Assembly: GCA_950097015.1 (NCBI GenBank) | Contig: CATNEN010000039.1 | Location: forward strand, 7,688,001-7,752,000 | Origin: Macrostomum hystrix | Lineage: Eukaryota > Animalia > Platyhelminthes | Direction of reading: 5' to 3' | Length of the DNA stretch: 64,000 nt | In this document: positions 119-42,863 of the stretch, piece by piece | Numbering within the stretch: the stretch's first letter is position 1 | Layout of the letters: each line of letters begins with the position of its first letter | The notes under the pieces: generated by a model | Told to the model about the DNA's origin: nothing | Databases searched by the model: none | The model's input: the letters and a program-made list of their open reading frames with translations, nothing else | Position numbers and translations under genes: made by a program

Positions 119-3100
119 TCAGTGAGTCACGATTTCACCGTACCATTGCGGCGGCGCTCGCGGCCTTGAGCTCACTCGGATCGCTGTCTGGGCTGGCTGC
201 TGCTGTCTCGCTGGGTCTGCCGCCGTCGCCGCCTCCGCGGCTGTCCCGGCTGCGCTGGGAGCCGGCGCTGGCCAGTGCGGCAGCGCTCCGGCTGGCCGCG
301 GTACCCGGACGCAGTTGTCGACGTGCCAGCGGGAGCCATCGCTGAGGATGACGGTGGTCGCGCTCGCAATCCGGGAGATCTGCCGTGGCTCGGACAGGTG
401 GCTGCTCAGCTTGCCGCGGGCGAACGGCCGCTTCACGCGCACCCAGTCGCCGACTATGAACGTGGGCGGCGGCCTCCGGGTCGTGTTGAGCTGATCGAAA
501 ACGCGCTGCTGCCTCCGCTTGATGCTGGCCGCCAGTCTGTGCCGCGCTGTTGTCCTTGGCTGCAGAGCTGTCAACGGGGTGCTGATCTTCCGGCCTGTCA
601 TGAGCTCCGCCGGTGACACTCCAGTCAGTGCATGTGGGGTGGCCCTGTACGACCACAGCAGCGTCTTCACCGCGTCCTTGAAGTCGTAGCCCTCCTCTAG
701 GTGCGTCTTTAGGCCGTCCTTGAGAAAACGGTTGAAGCGCTCTACGGCCGCGTTGCCCTGGGGGTGGTCGTGCGGTGACTGCCGGTGCCGGATGCCGCAG
801 CGCTGAAGAAAATCCTCGAAATCGCCGGACACGAACTGCGGACCTCCGTCTGTTTTAATGCTCTTCGGCAGGCCCCAGCGGCTAAACCACGTTGTCAGGG
901 CGTCGATGACATCCGCGCTTGTGACAGTCGACATGCAGGCAGCCTCCGGCCACTTTGAATGCAAATCGTACAGCACCAGGATGAAGCGACAGGAGTTCGG
1001 TGCAGAGTGCAGCTCCCCGAAGATGTCGAGCTGGAGTTCCTCCCATGGACGCGTCGGCCACTTCGTAGGGGTCAGGACCGTCTTGGGTGGCTTAAAGTTC
1101 TTCTCGCTAAGCAGGCAGGCCTCGCAATGTCGCACAAATTCCTCGATATGCTGATCGATTTGCGGCCACCAGACTGCGTCCCGGCAATGCTGCTTCATTT
1201 TGCTCACGCCGAGGTGCCCGAAATGCGCCAGCTGCAGCGTCTTCTCCCTCAGGGATGCGGGGATTACTGCTCGGGTGCCGTTGGCCAGGCACTTGCCGTC
1301 ATTCCAGAGCGCCAGTTGCGTCCGCATCCTCCAGAACGGCTGCAGCTCCGGCTTCAGCTGCTTGATGGAGTTAGGCCACCCCTGGAGCGTCATTGTGACC
1401 GCATCATTGATCACCGGGTCCTGCAGGGATGCCTCGGCCAGTTCGCTTGGACTGACAATCTCCAGCGCGCCCGACAGCAGTACGGCATTCACTTTGAGCT
1501 CGGTCGAGTCCTCTTCGCTTTGCCTTGGACATTTTGCTCCGAGAGCGCCGTGGCGCGACAAAAAATCTGGCACGATGTTCTTCTTGCCAGGAACGTGGCA
1601 GACTTGGAAGTCGTACGCGAGCAGGCGGTCGGCCCATCGATGAAGCCGCAGAGGCCGGTGGCCGCTGCCTTGAGCCGTCAGCAGCGTCGTCAGAGCCTGG
1701 TGGTCCGTGTGCAGCTCGAATCTCCGGCCGAACAGGAAATAGTGCCATCTCTCGCACGCGAAGATGCACGCGAGAGCCTCTCTCTCTGATGCGGAGTACT
1801 TGCGCTCGGTCGCTGACAGGGTCCTTGACTCGAAAGCGACTGGTCTTCGAACCCCGGCGCTGTCGTCTTGAATCAGCACGGCCCCCAGAGCGTGCGCGGA
1901 GCTGTCGCAGGCCACGATGATCTTGTCGTCGGGACTGAAGAATCGCAAGCATGTTGGGGACACCACCATCTTCTTGAGCCTCCAAAAGGCCTTTTGGCAA
2001 TCTGTTGTCCAGTTCCAGGGCTGCTCTTTGCGAAGTAGCAGCAGCAGCGGCTCGGCGATGTCGGACAAGTTGTGCAGAAAGTTGGAATAGAATTTAACCA
2101 TTCCCAGAAATGAGGCCACTGCCTCGGCGTTCTGGGGCTCCGGCACCGCCTCGATGTCTTCAACGTTAGACTGCATCGGCTGAAGTCCTCTCGCGGAGAC
2201 GATGTAGCCGAGGAACTGCACTGTCTCTGCAGCCCACTGGCACTTTGAGGCGTTGAGCGTGACGCCATGGGCGAGTAGCTTGTCCAGCACTGTCGTGAGC
2301 CGCCGCAGGTGCTCCGCCTCGTTGGCAGCGTGCACCACTATGTCGTCGATGTAGTGCAGCGTCCCGGAACAGCCATGGAGAATCTTGCTGAGAACTTTCT
2401 GGAAGGCCGCCGGGGCGCTGTTTAGGCCATAGCATACGCGCTTGTACCGGTACAGCCCTTTCTCCGTAATGAAGGCCGTTAAGTCCCGCCTATCTTCTGC
2501 TAGCTCCAACTGCAGATACGAAGAATTTAAATCCAGCTTAGTGAACACGGTCGAGCCCTTGAACTCCGTTGTCAGCTCCTCGAATGTCGGCAGCGGCTGC
2601 TTATCCGGAACTATGGCCTTGTTTGGGCACCTGAGGTCATTGCAGACCCTGATTTTGCCATCAGGCTTCGGGACGATCACCAGGTTCGAAATCCACTCTG
2701 AAGCCTGGATCTCCTCGATGATGTCATCCTCCAGCAGCTGGTCAATCTCCGCCTGGACTTTGTCTTTGATGCTAAGTGGGATGCGGCGAAGCGATTGCGC
2801 CACCGGGGGCACGGCGGGGTTCAGCCTGGGCGGGTGCTCGAATCCTCGGATCCGCCCGAGTCCCTGCGTCAGTGGCTTGAAGCGCTCGGCCAGCCAGACC
2901 GGTAGCTCTGCCGTTTTTTCGACTGTGCGCACGAGGTCGCCGTCCTTGTCCACCACCTGGAAGCTGAGGTGCTGCATCAGATCCGTTCCCATGATGTCGG
3001 AGCCTTGCCGTACCACGGTAAAGCAGAAAAATGGCACCAGCTGGCCGCGATAGCTGACGGACAGCACCGCCTCGCCGACGACATCGATTGCCTTGCCGTT

Positions 3101-4114
3101 GTACGCGATGAGTTTCTTGGTCGACGGCTGGAGTGGCGACCGGTTTCCGAGCTTCCTGAAGGTCCTCTCTGACAGGATGGACACCTTGGCTCCCGAGTCT
3201 ACAAGCAGATTCAGCCAGATGCCATGCACCTTCAGCCGGCAGCGGATGTCGGGACTGGCGGCGCCGCGCACCATGTACACGGCTTGGCCGCTCTCGTCCA
3301 TGACCTCGGCGACCTTGGCGCCCTGCGACCTGCACATCCGGCCGAAATGGTTCGCCTTCCCGCAGACATGACAACTCTTGCCTTCAGCTGGACACCGGGC
3401 TCGTCTGTTGTGCCCGCCTCCGCACTTGGAGCATGACTCTCGATCTGGTCGCCCTTGTCCTGTGTTCTTCCTGTCTGGTTGTAGTCGGACTCTCTTCACC
3501 TCTTCTTCCAGCTGTGCTCCGGCCGCGGCTGCGCCTTCCGTCTCTATCGCGCTGGCCTCAGCGATGCTGGTCTCCCATTGCTGGCTCAGCGTCACTGCCT
3601 TCTGCAGCGTCAGGCCGTCCTCGATCAGCAAGCGCTCTCGAATTCGCCTGTCGCTGACCTTCTCCACGATCTGGTCGCGGATCATTTCTTCCATCATGTC
3701 GCGGAACTCACATGAGCCAGCCAGAGCATACAGAGCCGCCACGAAGTCCGCAATCTTTTCACCCGGACGCTGACTGCGCTGCCGAAACTTGTGGCGCTCC
3801 GCCACCACGTTGACTTTGGGTCCGAACTGCTCGTCCAGAATCGCGACTGTCGCCGCGAGTTCTGTCGGACTCGGCCTCTTCGTTGCTGCCACAGCCGCAA
3901 AGACTCGCTGCCCTTCCGCGCCAAGGCAGTGCAGCAACAGCGCGCGCCGCCTAGCTTCCGGCAAAGTGTCGTAGCCGGCCGCAAGTAAGTAGTTCTCAAA
4001 GAGGGCCTTCCACTCTTTCCACGGCCTCGCCGGTCGGCCCGGCTGCGGCAGGAATTGATCCGGCGGCGATACGCTGATCCGCGGCGCTTCTGCTGAGTTG
4101 CTGTCACTCGTCAT
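119..4114 (-). CDS. Ty3/Gypsy (Mag-like) Gag-Pol polyprotein, intact single ORF
   Basis: 1331-aa ORF with zinc knuckles (CSKCGGGH..C, CHVCGKANHFGRMC), protease VDSGA, RT (KLDL..SYLQ, YIDD), RNase H (CDSS, TDH) and an HHCC/DDE integrase, in Gypsy order PR-RT-RH-IN. Confidence 0.95.
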   Translation of the reverse strand: MTSDSNSAEAPRISVSPPDQFLPQPGRPARPWKEWKALFENYLLAAGYDTLPEARRRALLLHCLGAEGQRVFAAVAATKRPSPTELAATVAILDEQFGPKVNVVAERHKFRQRSQRPGEKIADFVAALYALAGSCEFRDMMEEMIRDQIVEKVSDRRIRERLLIEDGLTLQKAVTLSQQWETSIAEASAIETEGAAAAGAQLEEEVKRVRLQPDRKNTGQGRPDRESCSKCGGGHNRRARCPAEGKSCHVCGKANHFGRMCRSQGAKVAEVMDESGQAVYMVRGAASPDIRCRLKVHGIWLNLLVDSGAKVSILSERTFRKLGNRSPLQPSTKKLIAYNGKAIDVVGEAVLSVSYRGQLVPFFCFTVVRQGSDIMGTDLMQHLSFQVVDKDGDLVRTVEKTAELPVWLAERFKPLTQGLGRIRGFEHPPRLNPAVPPVAQSLRRIPLSIKDKVQAEIDQLLEDDIIEEIQASEWISNLVIVPKPDGKIRVCNDLRCPNKAIVPDKQPLPTFEELTTEFKGSTVFTKLDLNSSYLQLELAEDRRDLTAFITEKGLYRYKRVCYGLNSAPAAFQKVLSKILHGCSGTLHYIDDIVVHAANEAEHLRRLTTVLDKLLAHGVTLNASKCQWAAETVQFLGYIVSARGLQPMQSNVEDIEAVPEPQNAEAVASFLGMVKFYSNFLHNLSDIAEPLLLLLRKEQPWNWTTDCQKAFWRLKKMVVSPTCLRFFSPDDKIIVACDSSAHALGAVLIQDDSAGVRRPVAFESRTLSATERKYSASEREALACIFACERWHYFLFGRRFELHTDHQALTTLLTAQGSGHRPLRLHRWADRLLAYDFQVCHVPGKKNIVPDFLSRHGALGAKCPRQSEEDSTELKVNAVLLSGALEIVSPSELAEASLQDPVINDAVTMTLQGWPNSIKQLKPELQPFWRMRTQLALWNDGKCLANGTRAVIPASLREKTLQLAHFGHLGVSKMKQHCRDAVWWPQIDQHIEEFVRHCEACLLSEKNFKPPKTVLTPTKWPTRPWEELQLDIFGELHSAPNSCRFILVLYDLHSKWPEAACMSTVTSADVIDALTTWFSRWGLPKSIKTDGGPQFVSGDFEDFLQRCGIRHRQSPHDHPQGNAAVERFNRFLKDGLKTHLEEGYDFKDAVKTLLWSYRATPHALTGVSPAELMTGRKISTPLTALQPRTTARHRLAASIKRRQQRVFDQLNTTRRPPPTFIVGDWVRVKRPFARGKLSSHLSEPRQISRIASATTVILSDGSRWHVDNCVRVPRPAGALPHWPAPAPSAAGTAAEAATAADPARQQQPAQTAIRVSSRPRAPPQWYGEIVTH

Positions 4115-5077
4115 GTTTCAGTTTGCACTTTTGCAGTTTGGCGCTGTTGTTTACGCTTGTCTTTACTTCGAGTGAATTAAGAAGCGAAGCGAGTTGAAGT
4201 CATGCAATTAATTGAATCTTCGCAGCAAGAACCCGTTCATACGGCCAAACCTCAAACGAGACAGAGAGCGCAATGGGGGATGACTCACAAAGGCCCAGAG
4301 GGCCAGACATTATATTTGAACTTAACACTAGCGGCTAGAGAGAAGCGATCGATAGTAAGGATAGGGTTAAACCCCGCCTCAGATGTACATAGGCAGACAA
4401 AGGAAAGCGACGAAAGGGGGGTTGGGGTACATTCGTGGAGAGTAGCAGGGGCAGGGGGAAGGAGGGGGTGCAGCGATAAAGAAAAGAGAGACACAATCAG
4501 AGCAAGTACAAACAAGTCGCGTAACCAAAAGTCGCTACACTCCCCCAAATGACAAAGACTTTGTCATTTCGAGCTCGAACTAAGCATGAATCAATTGAAC
4601 AAGGGCAACGGAACAAAAAAACGACAATTTTGAGAGACTGAAAGGGACACAAGTACGAGCATTGACGAAAAATAAATGTTTCCTCCACGAAGATTAAGCA
4701 ATGACCTACGATTTTACGAGTAGATAAATTAGTTGGCCAAAAATTAACAAAACTGACAACGACCTAGCCGACAGAAATTATATTGAAATTTACGTTACAA
4801 GTACGTTCACGAGTCACGAGTCCCTCATTAACATATTGAATGATGATATGATAATTTGCAACCGAGTTGTGACGCAAAAAATAAATGACTGAATGATAAC
4901 TACCGGGTACAAATGAGGGTCAGGGAAGCAAAAAAGGGTAAGTGAATGAGAACAGATGGAAACGCGATAACAAGAGTCGAGAACAAAAAATGAGCAAAAA
5001 TTATCAAGGTAGCTGATCTCGCACCAATGAACAGAACAGAAAGATTTAGAGAAACAGAGATCCGAGACGGAGACGGA

Positions 5078-8000
5078 TTAGATGCACAATTCAAGAGGAA
5101 TGAGAGCTTGGACAGGCCGTCTGATGCGCTCAGCCCCCCGAGAGCCCCTTTCCTTCGCCAGACGTACAACTGCGGAACGAACGGCACCATCTCGACCCTC
5201 ACGGACAGACTCTACCACACCCATCTTCCATTGCAGTCTTGGCTGATGCGGCTCTCCCTGAACCAAAACGACGTCTCCGGGTTTTGCAACTGGTCCTCCT
5301 CCATGCGACTTGAGCGCTTTCTCACGCAGGGCGGTGACATATGACGTTTTCCATACATCCCAAAAAACATTCAACGCTCTTCTGAGATGTTTGAGTCGAG
5401 CTGGCAATGGCAGGACGTTGGCGATACGGTTCGACGAGAGAGTTGGCTCCTGAGTCAACCGAGTTCCGAAGAGAAAGTGCGCAGGCGTCAATACGTCGTT
5501 GATCTCATCCGCCGACACATACATAAGTGGTCGACTGTTCACCACAGATTCCATTTCGATAACCGAAGTTGATAGCTCATCGAATGTTAGCAGAGCTTTG
5601 CCAATGCTCTTTTTCAATCCATCCTTAACGATTCCAACGAGTCTTTCCCAAAATCCGCCCCACCACGGGGCCTTCTCCGGAATGAACTCCCAAGAGATTT
5701 TCTTGTTAGCACAGAATGATTGAACTTCATAGCTGGTGCTAGCTCCAAGAATATTCGCGGCAGCCTTGAACGTCTTGGCATTGTCACTGATGATGGAAGG
5801 TATTCCGCGACGACTGACAAAACGACGTAATCCATTCAAGAACTGCGATGCGGTCATGTCAGGAATCAGTTCCAGATGCACTGCGCGAGTCGATGAGCAT
5901 GTGAGAAGTAGAATGTACGCCTTCCGAGAGTCACAACCATCCTCCCCCGTCCGATAGAATATCGGACCACAGTAGTCCACGCCGACTGATTGAAAGGGTC
6001 GGATGTCGGAAAGGCGAAACTCAGGTAGCTGAGAGATCTGAGGTACAACGTATGAGCGTCCTTGTACCTTCCTACACACCACACACTTCGATAGTTCTTG
6101 CTTAGTTCGTTGACGTCCCTTCAGAATCCAATATTTTTCACGAACTTTACTAAGCGTTGAGGCAACTCCCCCGTGAGCAACGGACTGATGAGCTTGTCGA
6201 ATAATGAGCTGCTCCAAGTGACTGTGGCGAGGTACTAAGATAGGATTATTAACTTCGAAGGACAGTGCGGAGATACGACCTTGTGAACGCAAAAGTCCCT
6301 TATCATCTAACCACAGATTCAAGTTCCTGTTCAGATGTGTTGCAGCAGAGCTACGCCGAATGTGATCGATTTCCTTTGAAAACGATTCCCTTTGACTTGA
6401 CCTTACCAATAGGATTTCTGCATCAGTCAACTCTTCGGCGGTCACCGTCCTTGATCTATTGACTAACGATTGAGCTCGAGCACTCCGTAGGTTGCGGACA
6501 AATCTTTGTACCCATGCTAGGACGCGTAAAACTCTCGAATAGTTCGAAAACTTGCCGATGTCAATGATTAAAGAGATACGATCGACGTTCTTAGATTCCA
6601 TGGGCTGTTCAGCGACTGTTGATAGTGCTTCTGCAGAGTTATGATCTTCCGCGACTGCGCTCGAATGCTTATCTTCAGACGAAACTGGGTAGATGCCTGA
6701 TCGAAGAAATTCGGGACCACTAAACCACACCTTGTTTTTCTGTAGCTGCCCTGGAAGACAGCCTCGAGATGGCAGGTCGGCGGGGTTCAGTTCCCCGGGA
6801 ACATGTCGCCACTCGGACGTTGACGTGAGAGTCCGGATCTCCTTAACGCGGTTTTGAACGAAAACTTGGCGAAGCTTGTCGGTGTTGGTGATCCACTGCA
6901 GAGTTGTCTTGCTGTCTGTCCAGAGATAACGCGTCATGCTGGGAAATTGCAAAGACACCGTGCGTATTAGACGAGCTAAGATTAGGGCTCCTAGCAGTTC
7001 TAGTCTAGCGATGCTAAGATTTGATAGCGGTGCCACGCGCGTTTTGGCCTGAATTAAATGCGTTGAAACGTTGTTTGTTTCCGACCGGGCCTGAATGTAG
7101 ACACAGGCAGCGTAAGCAGATTCGCTTGCATCACAGAATCCATGTAATTCCATTCGAACTGGCTCCGAATCGAGATCGGCGAAAAGGTAGCGAGGAACTT
7201 CGAAGCGTGAGCTCGACAACGACTGTAACCAACGGTTCCAACTCTCGGCGATATCTGGCGGAAGTTCGTCGTCCCAACCCGACTTGCGAACACACAGTTT
7301 CTGTAGCATCACCTTGACAACAGTCAAAGAGGGTGACAAGATTCCTAACGGATCGTACACAGACGCAAGTACTCCTAGCATCGACCTCTTGGTTGAAGAG
7401 GATCCGTTGACGTGGGTAACTAGTTCAGAAAACTGCATGACGAATGTGTCCCTGACCGAGTCCCAGTGGAGTCCAAGCACTTTTTCTGTATGACCAACAT
7501 CCTGATCGGGTAGCGAGCTGTTGAACGAATCTGAGTTGGATTTCCACTGTTGCATATTCATGCCAGCCAGGTTGAAGATATTTTTTGCATCTTTGTAGAG
7601 ATTGAATGCGTCACTTAGAGATTTACAGCTTGTCACTAAATTGTCGACGTACAAGTCTTTGCGAATAATCTCAGCGGCGAGTGGAAAATTATTCTTCTGG
7701 CTATCAATGTGTTGAAGGACCGTAGCTCTCAAGACACCAGGAGAGCAAGTAAGACCGAACGGCAATCTACAGAAGCGATAGTGAAAAACCTTGTCCGACT
7801 CACTCGGGTTAGTCCACAGAAATCTCAGATAGTCTCTGTCCTCACTATCGATGGCAATCTGCAAGAAGGCCTTTTCTATGTCTCCTATGATGGCGATCAG
7901 ATGTTTGCGAAATCTCATCAGAATTTCTGGGATCAGAGGTACATCAGTCGGACCAGCTTGAAGAAGATCATTGATTGAGAAGTCGCCTGTTCGAAGTCTG

Positions 8001-10411
8001 GCAGATCCATCAAACACAATACGTATCTTTGTGTGCTCACTGTCTGACTTTATGACGTGGTGATGAGGCATATAATGACAAGTGTTCTTGCCAAGATCTT
8101 TCTCGGGCACCTTCTCGATTATGCCAGAAGCTTCCTGTTCCGAAATGATTCCGCTATACTTTGTCAGAGTCTCTGGATCCTTCCTCAGAGCACGAGTTGT
8201 GGACGACAGTCTACTGTACGCCATGTCGAAGTGATCATCCAACGGCACTGAGCCTTCTGGGTATTTCCATGGTAGACTGACGCTGTACCGACCGTTCTCG
8301 AGCCTTGGATTACAGATAAACGAACCCTCCGTGGAATCATCCTTTTGCTCACTGATCCCTAGTGCTTCAAGTCGCCAGAATGAAGAGAGGTCACACTTCG
8401 ACGAGTCAGTTGTGACAAAGGCATCATCAGGAGTAGCGCAGCACAAGGTCTGAGCCGTACTACAATCAGCTGAATCTTCGGAAACGATAGGCTCATCCTT
8501 GGCTGACCCATCGATCGCTAGAGGACCACAGAGAAGGAATCCTAGCTTAGAGGAAATGGCGACTGGTCCTGAGGTGCCACGAATCACGTTGTCGCCTACA
8601 ATTTGGAAGTATTGATCTGAGCCTACGAGGATCGAGATTGGAGTACTGATGTCACGTGGGTCATATGGATCCGCTAGGTCTACATCACGAAGGTGTTGAA
8701 ACGAATTGACGATAACTGAAGTCTGAGGCTGACAGATCTGCTTTACGACATTAGCTTCCAGTCTGATGATCTCCATGGAGTCAACCTTGCGAATGTGGAA
8801 TTTCACTCTTGAAGAGTTCACCGTCGTAGCGATTCCAGAAAAGGCAGAGACTTTCAAACTTTCCTCGGCAAACCGTTCAAACTGGAGCAAGTCGCATACG
8901 TCTTCTCGAATATACGACCGATTGCTTGCGGTATCCAGCAGAACCCTCACCAGCAGTTCTCGACGTCCGTCAGGAGCAATCAGAATTGCCTTTGCAACTG
9001 GAAGAGCGACAGCGGGGTTACGATTGATGAACATGGAGAGAGCAAAGTTTCCTTCCGTTGAAACCACAGATTCAGGTTCACTCTGTGCCGCGTTCGTACT
9101 CCCAGTCTGCACCTGCCGAATGACGTCCTTCTTCGCATTGGCAAAGGTCTTGTTCTGGACCGCGCCACTCTTGACTGTCGAATCGATACTCTTTGCTTTC
9201 ATTTTGAAGCCCGACCCCTGTCCATCTGACAGGCCACAATTGCAGATGCTGACATGGTGAGCGCCTGAACAGTTTCTGCATCGCCGGGAATCATGACACG
9301 TCCTTGATGAATGACCTGACCTGAGGCACCGAAAGCAACGCTGCTCCTTCTTCAGAAATTCGATTCGAGCATCCACCGAGACCAACTTCGAACACTTCTC
9401 AGATGTATGGTCCGAGCCACAGTACGTACAAAAGATCTTCATGACAGCTTGTCGATCATTTCGTGACTGCACGGTTAACGTTGCAAGCGAAGACTTTGGT
9501 TGAAGGCAATGTCGACTGGCTTCTGAGTTGCTCGATTTCTTACCGCCCACTGCTGCGTTCTCTCGAACTTGAATTTCCGTCTGTAGAAACTCCAGCAGAA
9601 CAGCCATGTTGTTGATTTCTTTCTTCGACAGGCTCGCGCACTTCATTAGGTCGAGACGAAATTCATTTGGACACTTACGAAGCAGATTAGGCAACAGCAA
9701 TGCCTCATAAGCCGACGACATTACTCCCTGAACTTCCAAGCTTCGAACGGCAGCAGCTATGTCATCGTGAAACGAACGTAAGCCTGCTAATGACACCTCT
9801 GATAGGTGAATATCTGACAGTTGGTTCATTAGACTTCGAATTACCAGATCTGATTTACCAAAGCGTTGATGTAGAAGATCGATAGCTACCTTGTAATTAG
9901 CTGAAGTAACACTTAGTCCACGAATGCAGGACTTGGCTGATTCAGAGAGCGAATCCAAGAGGTAATTAAACTTGTCGATGTCCGATAGCTGATTATTCGA
10001 ATCGATTGACGAGGAGAACTGATCCCAATACGTTTGCCATGACGTCACCGTGCCGTCAAATGTAGGGATATGACGTTTCGGCAGTTTGACCTGAGGTCCA
10101 GATGTTACAGACTTAGTCGCATTTGATAATGATTTCTCTAACAATCTGACGTACTTCCGACACCTGAATGCATACTCATCAGCTTCTTCTTGTTCACGAC
10201 TCAGCTTTTCCTCTTCCATCTGACTCTGAATGTCCAGGTCCAATTCCTCCATCAATCCCAGTTTCTGCTTCAGAGTATCAATGCATGCTTCCGCTTCAGC
10301 GTTTATTTTGTCATCACGTCCACTTCCAGCTGACAGCCACTTCTCTGCTCGATTTATGGTCTTTGTCACAACGGACCGAATGGCCGCTCTCTTTCTGATG
10401 GCTTCATCCAT
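5078..10411 (-). CDS. BEL/Pao Gag-Pol polyprotein, intact
   Basis: 1777-aa ORF: Pao-type gag (IPTFDG..W..YWDQF), three Cys/His knuckles, protease LLDTAS, RT (DIEKAF, RLPFGL, YVDN), RNase H (LHGFCDAS, IARLEL, WTDS), integrase (VDYCGP, SDNA, PWWGGFWER). Confidence 0.95.
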   Translation of the reverse strand: MDEAIRKRAAIRSVVTKTINRAEKWLSAGSGRDDKINAEAEACIDTLKQKLGLMEELDLDIQSQMEEEKLSREQEEADEYAFRCRKYVRLLEKSLSNATKSVTSGPQVKLPKRHIPTFDGTVTSWQTYWDQFSSSIDSNNQLSDIDKFNYLLDSLSESAKSCIRGLSVTSANYKVAIDLLHQRFGKSDLVIRSLMNQLSDIHLSEVSLAGLRSFHDDIAAAVRSLEVQGVMSSAYEALLLPNLLRKCPNEFRLDLMKCASLSKKEINNMAVLLEFLQTEIQVRENAAVGGKKSSNSEASRHCLQPKSSLATLTVQSRNDRQAVMKIFCTYCGSDHTSEKCSKLVSVDARIEFLKKEQRCFRCLRSGHSSRTCHDSRRCRNCSGAHHVSICNCGLSDGQGSGFKMKAKSIDSTVKSGAVQNKTFANAKKDVIRQVQTGSTNAAQSEPESVVSTEGNFALSMFINRNPAVALPVAKAILIAPDGRRELLVRVLLDTASNRSYIREDVCDLLQFERFAEESLKVSAFSGIATTVNSSRVKFHIRKVDSMEIIRLEANVVKQICQPQTSVIVNSFQHLRDVDLADPYDPRDISTPISILVGSDQYFQIVGDNVIRGTSGPVAISSKLGFLLCGPLAIDGSAKDEPIVSEDSADCSTAQTLCCATPDDAFVTTDSSKCDLSSFWRLEALGISEQKDDSTEGSFICNPRLENGRYSVSLPWKYPEGSVPLDDHFDMAYSRLSSTTRALRKDPETLTKYSGIISEQEASGIIEKVPEKDLGKNTCHYMPHHHVIKSDSEHTKIRIVFDGSARLRTGDFSINDLLQAGPTDVPLIPEILMRFRKHLIAIIGDIEKAFLQIAIDSEDRDYLRFLWTNPSESDKVFHYRFCRLPFGLTCSPGVLRATVLQHIDSQKNNFPLAAEIIRKDLYVDNLVTSCKSLSDAFNLYKDAKNIFNLAGMNMQQWKSNSDSFNSSLPDQDVGHTEKVLGLHWDSVRDTFVMQFSELVTHVNGSSSTKRSMLGVLASVYDPLGILSPSLTVVKVMLQKLCVRKSGWDDELPPDIAESWNRWLQSLSSSRFEVPRYLFADLDSEPVRMELHGFCDASESAYAACVYIQARSETNNVSTHLIQAKTRVAPLSNLSIARLELLGALILARLIRTVSLQFPSMTRYLWTDSKTTLQWITNTDKLRQVFVQNRVKEIRTLTSTSEWRHVPGELNPADLPSRGCLPGQLQKNKVWFSGPEFLRSGIYPVSSEDKHSSAVAEDHNSAEALSTVAEQPMESKNVDRISLIIDIGKFSNYSRVLRVLAWVQRFVRNLRSARAQSLVNRSRTVTAEELTDAEILLVRSSQRESFSKEIDHIRRSSAATHLNRNLNLWLDDKGLLRSQGRISALSFEVNNPILVPRHSHLEQLIIRQAHQSVAHGGVASTLSKVREKYWILKGRQRTKQELSKCVVCRKVQGRSYVVPQISQLPEFRLSDIRPFQSVGVDYCGPIFYRTGEDGCDSRKAYILLLTCSSTRAVHLELIPDMTASQFLNGLRRFVSRRGIPSIISDNAKTFKAAANILGASTSYEVQSFCANKKISWEFIPEKAPWWGGFWERLVGIVKDGLKKSIGKALLTFDELSTSVIEMESVVNSRPLMYVSADEINDVLTPAHFLFGTRLTQEPTLSSNRIANVLPLPARLKHLRRALNVFWDVWKTSYVTALREKALKSHGGGPVAKPGDVVLVQGEPHQPRLQWKMGVVESVREGRDGAVRSAVVRLAKERGSRGAERIRRPVQALIPLELCI

Positions 10412-10769
10412 TGACCACCTTGGCGAAAGTGCGTCTGGCTAAGATCGGAACCCCAAGGAGAAGAGCGCAACGGATGCCGCAAGCGGATACAGCAAGACCT
10501 TGAAGTGGTGAAGAAAAAAAGGCAGAGAAAGACTCAAAGGACAGAGAAAGCAACAGAAGAATTTTAGCTTTGAGATGCGTGAAGAACAAAATAACAATAA
10601 GAGCAAAAACACACGTTTGAGTTACAAGATAACGAGAAACCGCGTAAAAAATAACGCCAGCGAGTACAGATGATAAATATAGGATTGCGATCAGTAAAAT
10701 ATATTATTACTTATCTCGACAGTTCAGTTAATTGATGAGACAGTCACGAAATAGGGAGACAGACACCAG

Positions 10770-10927
10770 CCGGTATGCGAGGGAGCGAGCGAGGCCGGCA
10801 GGCGTGAGCCAGTAGACGGGAGAGCGAACGAAGCCGGCAGGCAGGTGAAGAAGCGAGCGAGGCCGGCAGCAGACGAAGAGGCGAGCGAGACCGGCAGCAT
10901 ACAAAGAGGTGAGCGAGACCGTCGGCA
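10770..10927. repeat. Degenerate tandem repeats in the BEL 5' UTR
   Basis: About 5 imperfect copies of GAGCGAGCGAGGCCGGCAG. Confidence 0.6.
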
Positions 10928-11629
10928 ACTTCGACCGAATCGATGAGAATACGACTGACGACTTACTTTTCTAGAGGGCTTATTTTCGTTCGGGCGCCAT
11001 GTCTTTACTTCGAGTGAATTAAGAAGCGAAGCGAGTTGAAGTCATGCAATTAATTGAATCTTCGCAGCAAGAACCCGTTCATACGGCCAAACCTCAAACG
11101 AGACAGAGAGCGCAATGGGGGATGACTCACAAAGGCCCAGAGGGCCAGACATTATATTTGAACTTAACACTAGCGGCTAGAGAGAAGCGATCGATAGTAA
11201 GGATAGGGTTAAACCCCGCCTCAGATGTACATAGGCAGACAAAGGAAAGCGACGAAAGGGGGGTTGGGGTACATTCGTGGAGAGTAGCAGGGGCAGGGGG
11301 AAGGAGGGGGTGCAGCGATAAAGAAAAGAGAGACACAATCAGAGCAAGTACAAACAAGTCGCGTAACCAAAAGTCGCTACAACGCTTGGCTTGGCAGGCT
11401 TGCAGTCACTTCACTTCAGTCTACTCCGACCCCGGCTTATTGGGGTGGGTGTTCGCTTGAGCTTGCGATGCCAATGTTGTATATGAATAGTAGCGAGTCA
11501 GCCAAGTTAGTATCCGAAACTTTCACGCCAAGTTGGCTCTCAGTATTTGGACTATATATATTCTGCGCCAATCGATATCAGAGGTGTACATGTACGAACT
11601 ATGTACGTGCATTAATCAACTGCACAACA

Positions 11630-11880: not shown

Positions 11881-12167
11881 AAGGTCAATCACGTCCTACT
11901 GATCAGAAAGACAATACCACAGGAAAGGCCCATGCCCGAGACGCAGCGACTCGGGTTTCACCCATTGTTTTTGTTATTAACAATTCAAGCTGCAAACCTA
12001 TTCATGACTTTTGCTACAGTTCAGTTTATCTGAAAGCCCTTTGAATTGACAGCACAATTGAGACGCGGCTGACAAAACAGTTTTCGCTTTCCATCTCTAT
12101 GAAAGAAATTGATTTTTCATCAATTTCATAAAATTATTTTCATAAAAAGATTTCATAAAAATATTGA

Positions 12168-14422
12168 AGCCTTGTCTAACAGATCAAAGCCTTCTCTAAC
12201 AGATCAAAGCCTTCTCTAACAGGTCAAAGCCTTGTCTAACAGATCAAAGCCTTCTCTAACAGATCAAAGCCTTGTCTAACAGATCAAAGCCTTGTCTAAC
12301 AGATCAAAGCCTTGTCTAACAGATCAAAGCCTTGTCTAACAGATCAAAGCTTCGTCTAACAGATCAAAGCCTTCTCTAACAGATCAAAGCCTCGTCTAAC
12401 AGATCAAAGCCTCGTCTAACAGATCAAAGCCTCGTCTAACAGATCAAAGCCTTCTCTAACAGATCAAAGCCTTGTCTAACAGGTCAAAGCCTTCTCTAAC
12501 AGATCAAAGCCTTGTCTAACAGATCAAAGCTTCGTCTAACAGATCAAAGCCTTCTCTAACAGATCAAAGCCTCGTCTAACAGATCAAAGCCTCGTCTAAC
12601 AAATCAAAGCCTTGTCTAACAGATCAAAGCCTTCTCTAACAGATCAAAGCCTTGTCTAACAGATCAAAGCCTTGTCTAACAGATCAAAGCCTTGTCTAAC
12701 AGATCAAAGCCTTGTCTAACAGATCAAAGCCTTGTCTAACAGATCAAAGCCTTGTCTAACAGATCAAAGCTTCGTCTAACAGATCAAAGCCTTCTCTAAC
12801 AGATCAAAGCCTCGTCTAACAGATCAAAGCCTCGTCTAACAGATCAAAGCCTCGTCTAACAGATCAAAGCCTTCTCTAACAGATCAAAGCCTTGTCTAAC
12901 AGGTCAAAGCCTTCTCTAACAGATCAAAGCCTTGTCTAACAGATCAAAGCTTCGTCTAACAGATCAAAGCCTTCTCTAACAGATCAAAGCCTTGTCTAAC
13001 AGATCAAAGCTTCGTCTAACAGATCAAAGCGTTCTCTAACAGATCAAAGCCTTCTCTAACAGATCAAAGCCTTGTCTAACAGATCAAAGCCTTGTCTAAC
13101 AGATCAAAGCCTTCTCTAACAGATCAAAGCCTTCTCTAACAGATCAAAGCCTTGTCTAACAGATCAAAGCCTTGTCTAACAGATCAAAGCTTCGTCTAAC
13201 AGATCAAAGCCTTCTCTAACAGATCAAAGCCTTCTCTAACAGATCAAAGCCTTCTCTAACAGATCAAAGCCTTGTCTAACAGATCAAAGCCTTGTCTAAC
13301 AGATCAAAGCCTTGTCTAACAGATCAAAGCTTCGTCTAACAGATCAAAGCCTTGTCTAACAGATCAAAGCCTTCTCTAACAGATCAGAGCCTTCTCTAAC
13401 AGATCAAAGCCTTCTCTAACAGGTCAAAGCCTTCTCTAACAGATCAAAGCCTCGTCTAACAGATCAAAGCCTTCTCTAACAGATCAAAGCCTTCTCTAAC
13501 AGATCAAAGCCTCGTCTAACAGATCAAAGCCTTGTCTAACAGATCAAAGCCTTCTCTAACAGATCAGAGCCTTGTCTAACAGATCAAAGCCTTCTCTAAC
13601 AGATCAAAGCCTTGTCTAACAGATCAGAGCCTTCTCTAACAGATCAAAGCCTTCTCTAACAGATCAAAGCCTTCTCTTACAGATCAAAGCCTTGTCTAAC
13701 AGATCAAAGCCTTGTCTAACAGATCAAAGCCTTCTCTAACAGATCAAAGCCTTCTCTAACAGATCAGAGCCTTCTCTAACAGATCAAAGCCTTCTCTAAC
13801 AGGTCAAAGCCTTCTCTAACAGATCAAAGCCTCGTCTAACAGATCAAAGCCTTCTCTAACAGATCAAAGCCTTCTCTAACAGATCAAAGCCTCGTCTAAC
13901 AGATCAAAGCCTTGTCTAACAGATCAAAGCCTTCTCTAACAGATCAGAGCCTTGTCTAACAGATCAAAGCCTTCTCTAACAGATCAAAGCCTTGTCTAAC
14001 AGATCAGAGCCTTCTCTAACAGATCAAAGCCTTCTCTAACAGATCAAAGCCTTCTCTTACAGATCAAAGCCTTGTCTAACAGATCAAAGCCTTGTCTAAC
14101 AGATCAAAGCCTTGTCTAACAGATCAAAGCCTTGTCTAACAGATCAAAGCCTTCTCTAACAGATCAAAGCCTTCTCTAACAGATCAAAGCCTTGTCTAAC
14201 AGATCAAAGCCTTCTCTAACAGATCAAAGCCTTCTCTAACAGATCAAAGCCTTGTCTAACAGATCAAAGCCTTCTCTAACAGATCAGAGCCTTCTCTAAC
14301 AGATCAAAGCCTTGTCTAACAGATCAAAGCCTTGTCTAACAGATCACAACCTTATCTAACAGATCAAAGCCTTGTCTAACAGATCAAAGCCTTGTCTAAC
14401 AGATCACAACCTTATCTAACAG
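12168..14422. repeat. 20-bp satellite (AGATCAAAGCCTT[G/C]TCTAAC), about 112 copies
   Basis: Uninterrupted 20-bp period with variant units and higher-order duplications. Confidence 0.98.
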
Positions 14423-21018: not shown

Positions 21019-21727
21019 TGTGGTGCCGGTGTCTCTGGCCTTGTGGTTTTGTTAGGCCTTCCTCACCCAACGCCGTCTTGGCTGCCCGGTGCCCGGTGCC
21101 GCCATCTGATTGGCTGGGCGCGGGCATTGTGTGCCTATCCTACCCCAGCCCTGCGTGGCTTTGCCCTCACGCCAATCAGCTCTGCGTAGCTTTGCCCGTC
21201 CACCCGTCCAGCGCGTACAACCCTACCCCCCCCAGCGCGCTGTAGGCTTTGTTTGTGCTCCGCCCCTGTCTGCCCCCTTGTCAGCCCTTAAGGTATCGTT
21301 TTCGGCCCGGGCCAAGCCTCCCCCCCCCTTGCGAACTTTAAAAGATCGTGCCGTAAAGACGGTCTCTTACTGCGAAGGCTCAATTTATTGCATAGCGAAG
21401 TGATTATTGAATAGTGATTCCGAGTGCATGGTTTATTAAAGTGCAAAAATTGTCGACAAATACATTCAGCGTCATCCTGCCATCCTATCGTGCGTCCCGA
21501 CCGGTAAGCACTGTATTTGTGTCTGTCCTTTCGGGGTGCCAGGTCCGCACGGAGTACTGTAATAATCTTAGAAGTACTGTGTGAGCGTCCTAACGCCACC
21601 AGTCCCTGACTGCAACAGAGCGTCCTAACGCCTGGTTCAGTGATTGATAATATTTTACTTAATAGGGCTGTGGGCCGGGGATCTCAAACCGACCACTGTC
21701 ACTACAAATTGGCGCCCGAACGGGGAC
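21019..21727 (+). mobile_element. 5' LTR (about 690 bp) plus tRNA-Lys PBS of a truncated LTR retrotransposon
   Basis: TGTGGTG (21019) to CACTACA (21706) near-inverted ends. PBS TGGCGCCCGAACGGGGAC (21710-21727) matches the tRNA-Lys(UUU) 3' complement at 17/18. CCAAT boxes and ATTAAA (21435). The left boundary is less certain. Confidence 0.8.
21351..21394 (+). other. Spliced-leader (SL) exon-like sequence embedded in the LTR
   Basis: CCGTAAAGACGGTCTCTTACTGCGAAGGCTCAATTTATTGCATA differs at 2/44 positions from the Macrostomum lignano SL as I recall it (...GAAGACTCAATTTATTGCATG). No GT donor follows. Confidence 0.8.
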
Positions 21728-21754
21728 ACGGTCCCTCATTACCGATAGCAACTA

Positions 21755-22606
21755 CTCAGCAGGACAGAAGGCCGCGTTAGGCGCGCACGCTGGTACAGGG
21801 ACTCGGTTGTCTCGCTGCCAGGGCCGCGGCGGGCGCCGAAAGCGGCGCGAACTAGGGCCGCATGCGCCGCGTCGAGCTGCGCCTCGAGCGCCCCGGTCAT
21901 CGTCCAGGTCTCAGCATTGTACAAGAGGGCGGTCTCGACAACCGCCTGGAACAGCTGGGACCTGGCGCCGTTCGACAGGGCCTCGGAGAGTAGCACCGCC
22001 CGCACAGAACGGTAGGCGGCCCAGGCCTTGCCGCGTCGTCTCGCCAGGTCGTCGCCCACGTCAGGCACCAGTCCGCCGAGGTAGACGAACTGACGGCACT
22101 TCGGGAGCACGGTCCCGGGGCCGTCACCGTCTCTTAGTCGAATCTCGGCAGGTAGGTTTTGCGGCACCGTCAGCACCTCGGTCTTCATGGCGTTGATAGC
22201 GAGGCCGACCCTCGCCGCCGCCGCAGTCAGGCCATCCAGCAGCCGTTGGGCGCCTTCGGCCGTCGTAGACAGCAGGGCAAGGTCGTCCGCGTAGCCGAGG
22301 ACAGACAACTTCTTCTCCGGGTGCCGTCGACTAGTGCGTCTTTGAAGCAGAAAACCGTCCTCTGCAGTCGGCAGGCCGGTCCTGAGCACCCAGTCCATCA
22401 CCAGCACGAAAAGAAAAGGCGCCAGGGTGTCACCCTGCAGCACTCCGGAGGTAGTGCTGAAAAGGTCCGACGGTCCGTCTGGCGTCGCTACCACAGCGGT
22501 GGTGTCCTGATACAGTGCCATGATGGCGGAGATCAGCTGCTGCGGTATGTTGTAGGCACGGAGCACGTGAGGCAGCGCGCCGCGGGCCACCGAGTCGAAA
22601 GCTTTG
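21755..22606 (-). mobile_element. RTE-clade LINE fragment (reverse transcriptase)
   Basis: KAFDSV, GVLQGDTLAPFLF, GYADD, FVYLG, LLYNAETW motifs; truncated at both ends. Confidence 0.9.
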
Positions 22607-32635: not shown

Positions 32636-33395
32636 ATGAGATCAATCACGGAGTGTTTGCTGCTGAACCTGCTGTTGCTTAGCAGCTTGCCGCTCCTGAC
32701 AGTGCGGGCTCAGTGCCCCGCACCTTTCCTCCTCGAAGCGGACAGGTGTGTGTACGTGAACACCTCGCAGATTTATAGCTGGTGCTCAGCCAACCGGTTG
32801 TGTGCATCCATGGGAGCCGAGCTCATAAACTCGTACAGCTCGCTGCAGTTGATCAACAGCATGCCGAGCTTTGCCTGCCGTTGCAAACTGTGGTTCGGCG
32901 TGACTGACTTGGCGGACGAGAGAGGCACCAGTAGATCTGGCTGGCATCTCGTCAATGGAAACGGAATTCTGTCTCTCCAAAACTCGCTCTGGTTCTTTCA
33001 AATGCCAAATGACAACGGCAATCAGGACTGCATCAACACCTCGAAGTTCGCAAACATTCAGCTCGTAGACTTAAGCTGCTCTCAAGAACACGCATGGCGC
33101 TAACCCGGCTCGGACAATGACCAGCGCTTACTGGCTGCTGACAGCTTTCAAGCGCACCAGCTACAACCCCAGCACTGAGTACTGCTACTCTGACGTGCAG
33201 CAGGTGGGCGGTGTCATCCAGTGCGTTGCTGCAGCCATGCGCTCTGGTGGCTACTGCAGACACGTGCTGTTCAAGCGCAAGCTGAAACTGTGCCGCCTGC
33301 TGGAGTTCACCGACGCTCAGGTCGAGGAGGAGATTGAGAACAGCGCCGACTGGGTGAAATTTAGGGTTTCTCAGTCGCTGCCAAGTCCTGTCTGA
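32636..33395 (+). pseudogene. C-type lectin + Cys-rich (PAN/apple-like) gene, copy A1, frameshifted
   Basis: Paralogue of 42072-42863. About 20 nt are missing near 33078, removing the last CTLD Cys and shifting the frame (stop at 33103). The C-terminal module continues in another frame. Confidence 0.85.
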
Positions 33396-33932
33396 GCTGG
33401 GCTGTCGTGTCGCCTGTGCACTGTTTCGGCTCCTAAGAAATCTAAAATGGTTGGCACGCAACTCACGCAATGGAATGAACAAAGTTAAATACTTTTAACA
33501 AAGACTTCGTCAGACGGATCGAAAGTTAAAACTAATAAACTGAATTAAGATTGTGAAAATATAATCGATCGAATAAAAAACTGCATAAGAAGCTTTATCA
33601 GATAGAGGGTATTTCTCAGTAAAATTTTGCGAGTTGTCGAGATTGCTTATATAGCTGTATTTGATGGCTAACTTTTGATTTCATGCAGTTTTTGTTCTAC
33701 GAATCGACATTGACATTTGAGGTAAACCATGCTAGAGGATCTACTGGCAAAAATATCCAAGTTGATAAAAAGCCAACCAAAGTGGATAATTCTAAGTTGA
33801 ACTCTCCAATGGCCATATACTATATAATAAATCATCAAGTAGATAACTTAAAACCAAGTTATTACGAATTACGAAAAAAATAAATGTCAATTCAAAACGA
33901 TTCATATTTTGTGACGTTTGGTTGCTTTTTTA

Positions 33933-35760: not shown

Positions 35761-36644
35761 TAACTTCTTCGGAAGTTTCGAAGCCCAAATTTCCCTATAA
35801 AGAAGATATTTTAGCCGATTGGCTACGCATCCTGTCCAGAGAAGTGGGATTTTCAACCCAGACAACATTCGCTAGTCTCTTCTTGGCACTTCATTGAATC
35901 GGATTTTATCACCGACTAGATCAGGACAAGAATTAATTAATGCACATCGCCATAGCGAAGGCAGAAACGGCATCACTCGCTTGGGCAGAATTTTGAGCAC
36001 TGCAAAAATTGTCTACGGTCTGCCTTAATAAATCATCCCTCACTCTGAAATCGTAGCTCGGTGAAAATGTTGACGGCACAGCAAATACATTTAAATATAA
36101 ACACAGCAACCAATTAGCTACAAATCTTTCAAGAATTCAATTGTCTCAAATCAATTCAGCTCAAGACAAAAAGTCTAGTATTGCGCTGCTTTCACCGCTG
36201 ATTTGGCTAGCTGAAAAAACTGCATCGCAGAGTTTTCCTAATTTTAGAAGCAGAATTTTCGCAAAAAATCTATTTCAGCTCAAAGGGAACCCTACAAAGG
36301 CCCTTCCCCGCAACAAATGAATTTTCGCAAAAAAACTATTTGAGCTCAAAGGGGACCCTACAAAGGCCCTTCCCAGCAACAAATGAATTTTCAAGAGGAA
36401 AGCAATAATAGCTTATATATATATCACTAAAAGTAGACAAAACTCAGGGGAGCGACGAAATTTATGACAATCGATAAAAAACAATATGCGAAAGGAACAG
36501 AAACACAATGAAGCGCAATCTTTTTTTTCAGACTATAAACAGCATGAGACCACGCCGAGCAACACTCTTCAAGATATTAAAGCTGGTGGATAGTCTAACC
36601 AGAAGGCATTGTTCTAAAGACAAGTCAGAACATTTTTGGACACC

Positions 36645-37415
36645 ATGAGCCGATCGACATTGATGCTGTGCCTTCTGACCGTCTTGCCGCTGGTGGCAGT
36701 GCGGGCTCAGTGTCCCGACCCGTTCAGAATTGAGGCCAACAGGTGCATATTCGTAAACATGTCGCAGAGGCTGACCTGGTGCTCGGCCAACAGGTATTGT
36801 GTGTCGATCGGAGGCGAGCTCCTGAACTCGTACAGCTCACTGAAGCTGCTAAAGACTATGCCGAGTGTCCAGCAGTGCGGCTGCCAGATTTGGATCGGAG
36901 TGAGCGACCTGGCTGATGAGAGATTTGCTGACCGAGCTGGATGGCAGCAGGTGAATTATAACGGCATTCTAGCCCTGGACAACACCATATGGTACTCCAA
37001 TATGCCGAACAACAATGGAAACCAGGACTGCCTGCATAATTCCAACCTCATCATCAGTGATCTAATTGATAATTTCTGCTCTTTCAAAAAAACATTTATT
37101 TGCGAATGGCGGAATTCAACTTCGCAAAGCCGGTCTCAAAATAGCTTGCTCTGGCAGAGGACTGTCTTCAAGTGCACCAGCTACAACCCCAGCACTGAGT
37201 ACTGCTACTCTGACGTGCAGCAGGTGGGCGGTGTCATCCAGTGCGTTGCTGCAGCCATGCGCTCTGGTGGCTACTGCAGACACGTGCTGTTCAACCGCAA
37301 GCTGAAACTGTGCCGCCTGCTGGAGTTCACCGACGCTCAGGTCGAGGAGGAGATCGAGAACAGCGCCGACTGGGTGAAATTTATGGTTTCTCAGTCGCTG
37401 CCAAGTCCTGTCTGA
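36645..37415 (+). CDS. Secreted C-type lectin + Cys-rich C-terminal module, copy B1 (intronless)
   Basis: Signal peptide, CP..F...C, W..A..YC...G.EL, IWIG, W...MPNN...QDC, C...K.FICE. Confidence 0.88.
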   Translation: MSRSTLMLCLLTVLPLVAVRAQCPDPFRIEANRCIFVNMSQRLTWCSANRYCVSIGGELLNSYSSLKLLKTMPSVQQCGCQIWIGVSDLADERFADRAGWQQVNYNGILALDNTIWYSNMPNNNGNQDCLHNSNLIISDLIDNFCSFKKTFICEWRNSTSQSRSQNSLLWQRTVFKCTSYNPSTEYCYSDVQQVGGVIQCVAAAMRSGGYCRHVLFNRKLKLCRLLEFTDAQVEEEIENSADWVKFMVSQSLPSPV

Positions 37416-37679
37416 GCTGTCTGATCTATAGCTTTTCCTGCAGCACATAATTTATTGCGCACTGCATTAACTAATTGAAGTTGTTGAGTAGACTGTGATG
37501 CGACTGAAGCATGTTAAAAATACAAGAAGCAAAAAGCTTGGGAGTTATAGTTGAAAAGCAGTAAAGGATGAATTTTAATTTGAAAGACGTCTGCCTTCTA
37601 TTTGACTTTGTCTACAGTTTGGTTCTTTTGGACTGCGTCTTTGACGCAAGCAGTACACATCACAGAATAATACATTATT

Positions 37680-42071: not shown

Positions 42072-42863
42072 ATGAGATCAATCACAGAGTGTTTGCTGCT
42101 GAACTTGCTGTTGCTTAGCAACTTGCCGCTCTTGACAGTGCGGGCTCAGTGCCCCGCACCATTTCGCATCGAGGCGGGCAAGTGTGTGTACGTGGAGACC
42201 TTGCAGATCTACAACTGGTGCTCAGCCAACCGGTTGTGTGCATCCATGGGAGCCGAGCTCATCAACTCGTACAGCTCGCTGCAGTTGATCAACAGAATGC
42301 CGAGCATTTTCTGCGGTTGCAAAATGTGGTTCGGCGTGACTGACTTGGCGGACGAGAGAGGCACCAGTAGATCTGGCTGGCATCTCACCAATGGAAACGG
42401 AATTCTGCCTCTGAACGACTCGCTCTGGTCCTACGGAAAGCCAAACGACAAAGGGAATCAGGACTGCATCAACAACTTGAAGGTCACCTTGGAGTTTTCA
42501 GACATTCTGTTTATAGACCTACAATGTTCAGAATTTCGCGGAGCCGTCTGCGAGTACACGCATGGCGCTAACCCGGCTCGGACAATGTCCAGCGCCAATT
42601 GGCTGCTGACAGCTTTCAAGCGCACCAGCTACAACCCCAGCACTGAGTACTGCTACTCTGACGTGCAGCAGGTTGACAGTGTCATCGAGTGCGTTGCTGC
42701 AGCCATGAGCTCTGGTGGCTACTGCAGACACGTGCTGTTCAACCGCAAGCTGAAACTGTGCCGCCTGCTGGAGTTCACCGACGCTCAGGTCGAGGAGGAG
42801 ATTGAGAACAGCGCCGACTGGGTGAAATTTAGGGTTTCTCAGTCGCTGCCAAGTCTTGTCTGA
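42072..42863 (+). CDS. Secreted C-type lectin + Cys-rich C-terminal module, copy A2 (intronless, intact)
   Basis: Signal peptide, MWFG, W..GKPND...QDC, C.....AVCE. The upstream 250 bp is homologous to that of A1. Confidence 0.88.
   Translation: MRSITECLLLNLLLLSNLPLLTVRAQCPAPFRIEAGKCVYVETLQIYNWCSANRLCASMGAELINSYSSLQLINRMPSIFCGCKMWFGVTDLADERGTSRSGWHLTNGNGILPLNDSLWSYGKPNDKGNQDCINNLKVTLEFSDILFIDLQCSEFRGAVCEYTHGANPARTMSSANWLLTAFKRTSYNPSTEYCYSDVQQVDSVIECVAAAMSSGGYCRHVLFNRKLKLCRLLEFTDAQVEEEIENSADWVKFRVSQSLPSLV

Follow-up and report, generated by a model that had tools for sequence, protein, structure and literature searches.

How did the host's own spliced leader come to lie inside the long terminal repeat (LTR) of a flatworm retrotransposon, and does it have a role there? 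We addressed this question at a locus of Macrostomum hystrix, in a stretch of 64,000 nt (contig CATNEN010000039.1, positions 7,688,001 to 7,752,000), which is called the window below and whose positions are counted from its first base. The preliminary description of this DNA, made from the letters alone, had pointed to a 44-mer resembling the spliced leader (SL) of Macrostomum lignano in the middle of an LTR, and we located this 44-mer at 21351-21394 on the + strand, in the sense orientation of the element as claimed. It occurs once in the window and gave 0 matches in 100 shuffles. The window was scanned with nhmmer using a profile of a small set of five natural 45-nt SL variants, and the segment was detected with E = 5e-17. 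The results showed that 21350-21395 on the + strand is a complete copy of the host 45-nt SL exon, hereafter the relic, with 44 bases identical to the genuine exon plus one inserted A. The single substitution, A to G at 21378, falls on SL position 29, and the inserted A lies at 21394, before the terminal G at 21395, where it destroys the ATG and creates a TAG. The identity of the segment and the loss of its AUG had thus been recognized correctly from the start, but the 42/44 match with two substitutions reported then is one substitution and one inserted A relative to an exon of 45 nt.

To place the relic among the SL copies of its host, we searched the M. hystrix assembly, whose 42 contigs amount to 220,453,370 bp (Table 1 of PMC10468722). 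The published SL of M. lignano is a 35-mer (PMC8629364), and this 35-mer is present unchanged in the M. hystrix SL and genome. Searching genome-wide with the SL core and allowing up to 2 mismatches gave 77 matches, 18 of which are arrayed on contigs C15, C17 and C42, repeat every 11.6-11.7 kb and continue past the exon as ...GCATG|GTAAGACACCG.... One array unit holds 18S, 5.8S and 28S rRNA by Rfam, indicating that the SL RNA gene sits in the rDNA spacer, and the genes lie ~2.3 kb upstream of the 18S gene on the same strand (L066, G000:C17:97000-106999). The SL RNA gene folds into three stem-loops with an Sm-like site, AUAUUUUUAG (z = -3.6), and its donor is GTAAG. A further SL-gene-like copy with a different 5' flank was seen at C1:16047913. 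Fifty-eight copies within 2 mismatches are not SL RNA genes, and at least 34 of these 58 belong to Gypsy and BEL/Pao LTR groups.

We then compared four sets of sequences, namely the SL RNA gene, the Gypsy LTR, the BEL/Pao LTR and unrelated dispersed copies. In all four the likeness begins at one G, that of GCCGTAAAGA, and all four diverge again at the splice donor, indicating that the mature exon is 45 nt long; its first base is the G corresponding to 21350, one base before the earlier 44-mer. The similarity of the relic to the SL RNA gene starts at the +1 G and ends at the GT donor. Sequence comparison found none of the upstream promoter, intron, hairpins or Sm-like site of the SL gene shared with the LTR. 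Since nothing beyond the exon is shared with the gene, the source of the relic was a spliced RNA and not SL gene DNA.

The relic lies in a 688-bp LTR, TGTGG...CTACA, at 21019..21706 on the + strand, which is the 5' LTR of a truncated Ty3/Gypsy element of the young subfamily A1. The TG..CA limits proposed earlier are backed by the 4-bp target-site duplications of sister copies, and the tRNA-Lys primer binding site (PBS) was borne out as well. This site, TGGCGCCCGAACGGGGAC at 21710..21727 on the + strand, follows a 3-nt spacer, AAT, and is an 18/18 complement of the 3' terminus, CCA included, of three identical tRNA genes, whose anticodon loop CTTTTAA identifies them as tRNA-Lys(UUU). The limits of U3, R and U5 are presumptive. 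The presumed U3, 21019..21349, contains a CCAAT-type GATTGG box at 21108-21113, a CCAAT box at 21172-21176 and a TATA-like CTTTAAAAG at 21336-21344, all on the + strand and conserved across A1-A4, and these blocks together form a putative promoter. After the relic, the rest of the presumed R, 21396..21460, holds an ATTAAA poly(A) signal, read from the sequence, at 21435-21440, downstream of the relic as had been described. The presumed U5, taken from the LTR alignment, covers 21461..21706 and ends in CA. Beyond the PBS the element retains a last 27 nt of its leader (21728..21754, + strand), where it ends. In a blastn comparison with the window, a full-length copy matched only 21019-21754, with gag, pol and the 3' LTR missing, so that the window Gypsy copy is a dead fragment of 5' LTR plus PBS. 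A GC-rich reverse-transcriptase fragment of non-LTR type, with a YADD box and a partial Pfam RVT_1 match (21739..22590, minus strand), abuts the truncation point; it showed no similarity to Gypsy pol and is not part of the element.

The structure of the family was established from its other copies. At least 20 further LTRs of the genome match the window LTR at 96-98% identity. Five LTR pairs 7-9 kb apart represent full-length elements, one of them a near-identical segmental duplicate of another. Target-site duplications of 4 bp were found for the five full-length copies and for many solo LTRs; the window copy has its 5' LTR only. In the full-length element L061, gag is 302 aa long and has a CCHC knuckle, and pol, of 1,471 aa, runs from protease through reverse transcriptase and RNase H to integrase; this gag and the pol order assign the family to Ty3/Gypsy. 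Its Pfam domains follow as zf-CCHC, Asp_protease, RVT_1, RT_RNaseH, Integrase_H2C2 and rve, none of which was found in the window fragment. In full-length copies the polypurine tract AGGAGGGGAGGA adjoins the 3' LTR. Very recent activity of the family is indicated by its LTR pairs, which show only 0-2 mismatches over ~690 nt, and by the open frames of gag and pol.

Several minor features of these copies were also recorded. At the start of pol, a 60-nt tandem repeat encodes a Q/H-rich stretch (L061 2420-2680). A candidate third reading frame of L061 (6841-7476, 211 aa) was rejected as a gene, being the translation of a tandem repeat that occupies 6823-7476 between pol and the 3' LTR. The regions C8:3484327-3493176 and C8:3499991-3508840 (G000) contain two full-length Gypsy copies with their flanks and differ at 2 of 8,850 nt, which points to a segment of ~15.7 kb that was duplicated recently, or else to duplication in the assembly. 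The LTRs at C14:826237 and C10:571350 share flanks and may be haplotigs.

The distribution of the relic was followed in comparisons that were all made between natural copies. The relic was present at the same position in 21/21 young A1 LTRs listed, including both LTRs of the five full-length elements. All 21 carry the derived G and the inserted A, and most show a further T to G change; a one-off insertion, the outcome that would have spoken against the preliminary description, was not what we found. The older subfamilies A2-A4, with LTR identities to A1 of 88-91% for A2, ~75-87% for A3 and ~80% for A4, also contain the relic at the same position, and nearly all copies have the derived G at SL position 29. 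The same position and the shared derived G indicate one old capture followed by inheritance as DNA. A2 and A3 keep an intact junction, ...GCATG|CGAAGTG, as expected for an SL joined to an exon, and because the older subfamilies still read ...TTGCATG|CGAAGTG, the second change in the relic is an insertion. The two most abundant subfamilies no longer have the terminal AUG, A1 owing to the inserted A and A4 because it reads ...GCATA, and it is kept only in the rarer A2 and A3. No sister LTR lacking the SL, from which the ancestral acceptor site could be reconstructed, was found, and a search for a host-gene source of the stretch just 3' of the SL gave no genomic match confined to that stretch.

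The preliminary description had seen only one such copy in the window, which is true of the Gypsy family but not overall, as two more SL relics lie in an intact BEL/Pao element at 4158-11381 on the minus strand. This element has a 1,777-aa gag-pol ORF (5078-10411), LTRs at 4158-4539 and 11000-11381 that align without differences, a PBS at 10988-10999 and one diverged SL relic in each LTR, at 4201-4245 and 11043-11087, all on the minus strand. The LTRs of its family are 370-390 bp long, and the domains found were Peptidase_A17, DUF1759 and DUF5641. The BEL/Pao LTR has only the SL in common with the Gypsy LTR, and its relic, which keeps the ATG, lies 49 nt before the LTR end. It is a capture independent of the Gypsy one, in a second superfamily. 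The BEL/Pao relic is canonical in one subfamily and has 8/45 changes in another, compared with ~14% over the whole LTR, indicating that this SL has been conserved no more strongly than the LTR around it. The nearest TATA-like box in this family lies ~62-68 nt upstream of the SL.

Other repeats of the window were noted alongside. A 1,331-aa ORF of another Gypsy-type element (119-4114, minus strand), with reverse transcriptase, RNase H, integrase and a weak PNMA-like gag match, adjoins the BEL/Pao element. A tandem array of a 20-nt unit, with more than 110 copies at 92-98% identity, occupies 12027-14300 and is C-rich on the + strand (GC skew -0.33). Inverted repeats pair 36587-37419 with 48984-49816 (833 nt, 99%) and 33131-33403 and 42600-42871 with 48980-49252 (~270 nt, 93-95%), and these large inverted repeats suggest further repeated elements in opposite orientations.

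Our main reading, to which we give a probability of roughly 80%, is that the relic is a heritable fossil of SL trans-splicing: an element RNA acquired the SL by trans-splicing, reverse transcription turned it into DNA, and the leader was from then on a fixed part of the LTR. The preliminary description had proposed the same origin, and the exon-exact bounds, the position throughout the family, the presence in both LTRs, the derived changes and the independent capture in a second superfamily support it well, if indirectly. In the history that we infer, the RNA of an ancestral Ty3/Gypsy element would have been joined to the host 45-nt SL by trans-splicing, the acceptor lying in the 5' LTR, and reverse transcriptase would have copied this trans-spliced RNA up to the capped 5' end. 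An irregular first-strand transfer, non-homologous or guided by microhomology, would then have lodged the SL copy downstream of the core promoter and ahead of the remainder of R, and plus-strand synthesis would have carried it into both LTRs. From then on it would have passed down at least four subfamilies like any other LTR DNA, without being re-acquired in each replication cycle. In canonical first-strand transfer the copy of a 5'-terminal SL would be left as an unpaired 3' flap and cannot be brought into the LTR, and a rare irregular event must therefore be assumed, at least twice in the M. hystrix genome. Since the 5' end of the RNA is the template for R in the progeny, trans-splicing in every cycle would restore the canonical SL, contrary to the changes that the copies have kept.

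To judge what the relic may do at present, we considered its place in the LTR together with RNA data. The relic lies between the conserved TATA-like box and the poly(A) signal, near the U3/R boundary, at the expected beginning of R. The start of the TATA-like box is only 13 nt upstream of the relic, and with the usual distance of ~30 nt from TATA to start, transcription is predicted to begin near SL position 17-21. Judged from this layout, the relic probably lies at or just inside the start of R and would be transcribed, wholly or partly, as the 5' end of the element RNA. The RNA data were assembled Logan contigs from four runs of one study, which resolve no RNA starts, ends or trans-splicing. 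These contigs behave as RNA, in that a neighbouring host exon stops at its splice junction and SL words are ~10^5 deep. In the four runs, 60-71% of the words of the element were present, and contigs extended across the whole element. Contigs of U3 had a depth of 14-59 compared with 4-15 for U5 and the interior taken together and 5-7 for the interior of the element. The 5-10 times greater depth of U3 over U5 is consistent with the family being transcribed and with polyadenylation 3' of the relic. The only long contig spanning the relic keeps the inserted A. Candidate joints from the SL to the element (877->2432/2611/2647) end in CC, CT or AA and none in AG; they were rejected as chance 22-24-nt matches of host SL-mRNAs to the 60-nt Q/H-rich pol repeat, and none of the contigs joined a genuine SL to present-day element RNA.

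Conservation was then compared along the LTR. Identity of the relic between subfamilies is 85.5%, within the top 6% of all 46-nt windows, and the flanking windows reach 60% and 51%. In pairwise comparisons between subfamilies, identity is 80-92% for the relic, 80-94% for the proximal U3, 38-84% for the next 78 nt and 52-95% for U5, and the rest of the presumed R is the least conserved stretch. In A4, AATAAA follows directly after the SL and the sequence just downstream has been replaced. The measure covers 46 columns in nine natural copies only, and with so few columns behind it, this island of conservation hints at constraint on the relic. Its slower evolution than the flanks suggests that it may now be part of something the element needs, such as the start-site region, the 5' leader or the homology of R. 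We also applied a four-gamete test, aimed at mapping R from recombinant LTRs, to 27 informative sites in 14 independent A1 LTRs; incompatibilities occurred along U3 too, and no block boundary was found at the SL. In the presumed R, no RNA structure was found beyond the small 5' hairpin of the SL (z = +1.4).

Two other accounts concern how the SL came to be, or is kept, where it is. Of the 46 positions 45 match the SL exon, as they would if the segment were an SL RNA gene, a pseudogene or SL-gene DNA gained by recombination or by insertion into an SL gene, as with the site-specific retrotransposons of trypanosomatids, but we assign this account almost no probability. The preliminary description had already set aside an SL RNA gene for want of a GT donor and an Sm site, and rightly so: directly after the relic the LTR reads ...GCATAG|CGAAGTG, with no GT donor, whereas the gene reads ...GCATG|GTAAGACACC and goes on through two more hairpins and the Sm-like site. 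No Sm-like site with stem-loops II and III was found 3' of the relic in the LTR, and an Rfam search of the LTR found no RNA family. There is no shared upstream sequence either, the rDNA repeat that houses the genuine genes is on other contigs, and the segment is internal to the LTR and has been copied along with it. The SL could also be a working R, with element RNAs trans-spliced anew in each cycle at CATAG|CG (21391-21397) and the SL pairing with its 3' LTR copy in first-strand transfer, which would free the element from the need for a precise promoter. The A inserted in A1 does make a pyrimidine-rich, acceptor-like site, ...TTTATTGCATAG, exactly at the ancestral SL/exon junction. However, neither the derived G nor the inserted A has been lost from any of the 21 young copies listed, the two LTRs of each pair are identical (0-2 mismatches), the sole long contig over the site retains the inserted A, and no AG stands at the junction in A2-A4 or in the BEL/Pao family, all of which makes such a cycle very unlikely.

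Two further accounts, and one that denies the relic any role, concern what the captured SL does. Transcription of the LTR might start at the first base of the SL, yielding RNAs that resemble trans-spliced host mRNAs in translation, export or 'self' recognition. Such mimicry would agree with the place of the SL copy, which the conserved TATA-like box directly precedes and the poly(A) signal follows, with the lower conservation of both its flanks, and with the independent capture of a full-length SL by two superfamilies. We nevertheless consider it improbable, as a start near SL position 17-21 would leave only about half of the leader transcribed, the leader is not intact, its terminal AUG being lost in A1 and A4, and the BEL/Pao family has its nearest TATA-like box ~62-68 nt from the SL. 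A Pol II transcript of an LTR carries an m7G cap, so a leader encoded in DNA is expected with m7G and not with trimethylguanosine. The SL RNA cap is trimethylguanosine (PMC8629364). We are equally doubtful that LTR retrotransposons of Macrostomum have repeatedly co-opted the SL exon as a selected start-site or 5'-leader module, their RNAs being treated like trans-spliced host mRNAs in translation, export and small-RNA 'self' licensing; if they have, the independent Gypsy and BEL/Pao captures together with the conserved island would be the signature. That the relic is a neutral passenger without a role, its conservation a sampling effect of a short segment, is a more tenable alternative, though still not a likely one. 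The comparison over 46 columns only, a BEL/Pao relic that diverges as fast as its LTR and the lack of special RNA structure in the presumed R (z = +1.4) all speak for it. Against it, the Gypsy relic ranks in the top 6% of windows with both flanks much less conserved, and it has persisted through four subfamilies while the adjoining downstream sequence was replaced in A4.

The reading of the relic as a fossil of trans-splicing, captured by reverse transcription, was finally set against known systems. SLACS, CZAR and CRE are site-specific non-LTR retrotransposons that insert into the SL RNA genes of trypanosomatids. They have the link between a retroelement and the SL in common with the present case, but they insert into SL genes and are not known to have an SL copy in a terminal repeat. 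The genuine Macrostomum SL RNA gene (PMC8629364, and the M. hystrix genome) shares the exon with the LTR, and its GTAAG donor, three stem-loops, Sm-like site and rDNA location are absent from the LTR. In Caenorhabditis elegans, the Ty3/Gypsy element Cer1 makes an SL1 trans-spliced RNA (PMC3315495), so that the first step of the proposed origin, trans-splicing of a Gypsy-type element RNA, occurs in nature. In Cer1, however, only a 2.4-kb subgenomic RNA is trans-spliced and the 8-kb genomic RNA is not, and no SL copy has been reported in its LTR. Dinoflagellate retrogenes carry relict SLs (Slamovits and Keeling 2008, as cited in PMC12582326; PMC12014239), and there too, as these accounts describe it, a DNA-encoded SL copy marks a reverse-transcribed trans-spliced RNA. 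The carriers described in them are retrogenes of the host whose relics stand 5'-terminally in the retrocopy, often after serial re-splicing, whereas the carrier in M. hystrix is an autonomous LTR retrotransposon whose relic is internal to the LTR and needs an irregular strand transfer.

The closest precedent comes from parasitic flatworms, in which 597 loci with partial SL sequences were tied to mobile elements, primarily LTR and LINE, and given the same explanation (PMC12582326). Those loci likewise show similarity to the SL exon only, inside flatworm retroelements. They are treated in one paragraph, as loci discarded during SL-gene annotation, with partial leaders, in parasitic species, and with no LTR position, family analysis or free-living species. 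The M. hystrix leader, by comparison, is complete, lies between a TATA-like box and a poly(A) signal, occurs in both LTRs and in four subfamilies, and is relatively conserved. The SL goes unmentioned in a survey of LTR retrotransposons from M. lignano (PMC12801592). What is added here are the exact 45-nt bounds, a single capture common to four Gypsy subfamilies, the inserted A, the conserved island and two captures in one window.

If the relic arose as proposed, RNAs of LTR retrotransposons in a free-living flatworm were substrates of SL trans-splicing, and the leader could enter the genome and be passed on within the LTR. Such relics would mark where the RNAs of ancestral elements began, since the SL is a tag of host origin that is dated and whose 5' end is known, and they could be used in studying the trans-splicing of mobile elements, retroposition rates and the evolution of LTR promoters. 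Should their conservation reflect function, a host RNA-processing signal would have been co-opted by mobile elements. The relics are also a trap for annotation, as they mimic SL RNA genes and trans-splice sites and may misplace SL-containing RNA-seq reads.

Apart from those placed in the two LTR groups, the copies that are not SL RNA genes include 24 dispersed ones, among them C1:19308502 and C1:19312657. These two SL copies lie 4,155 bp apart on the same strand and carry the same two changes, and the pair looks like a third SL-bearing LTR element.
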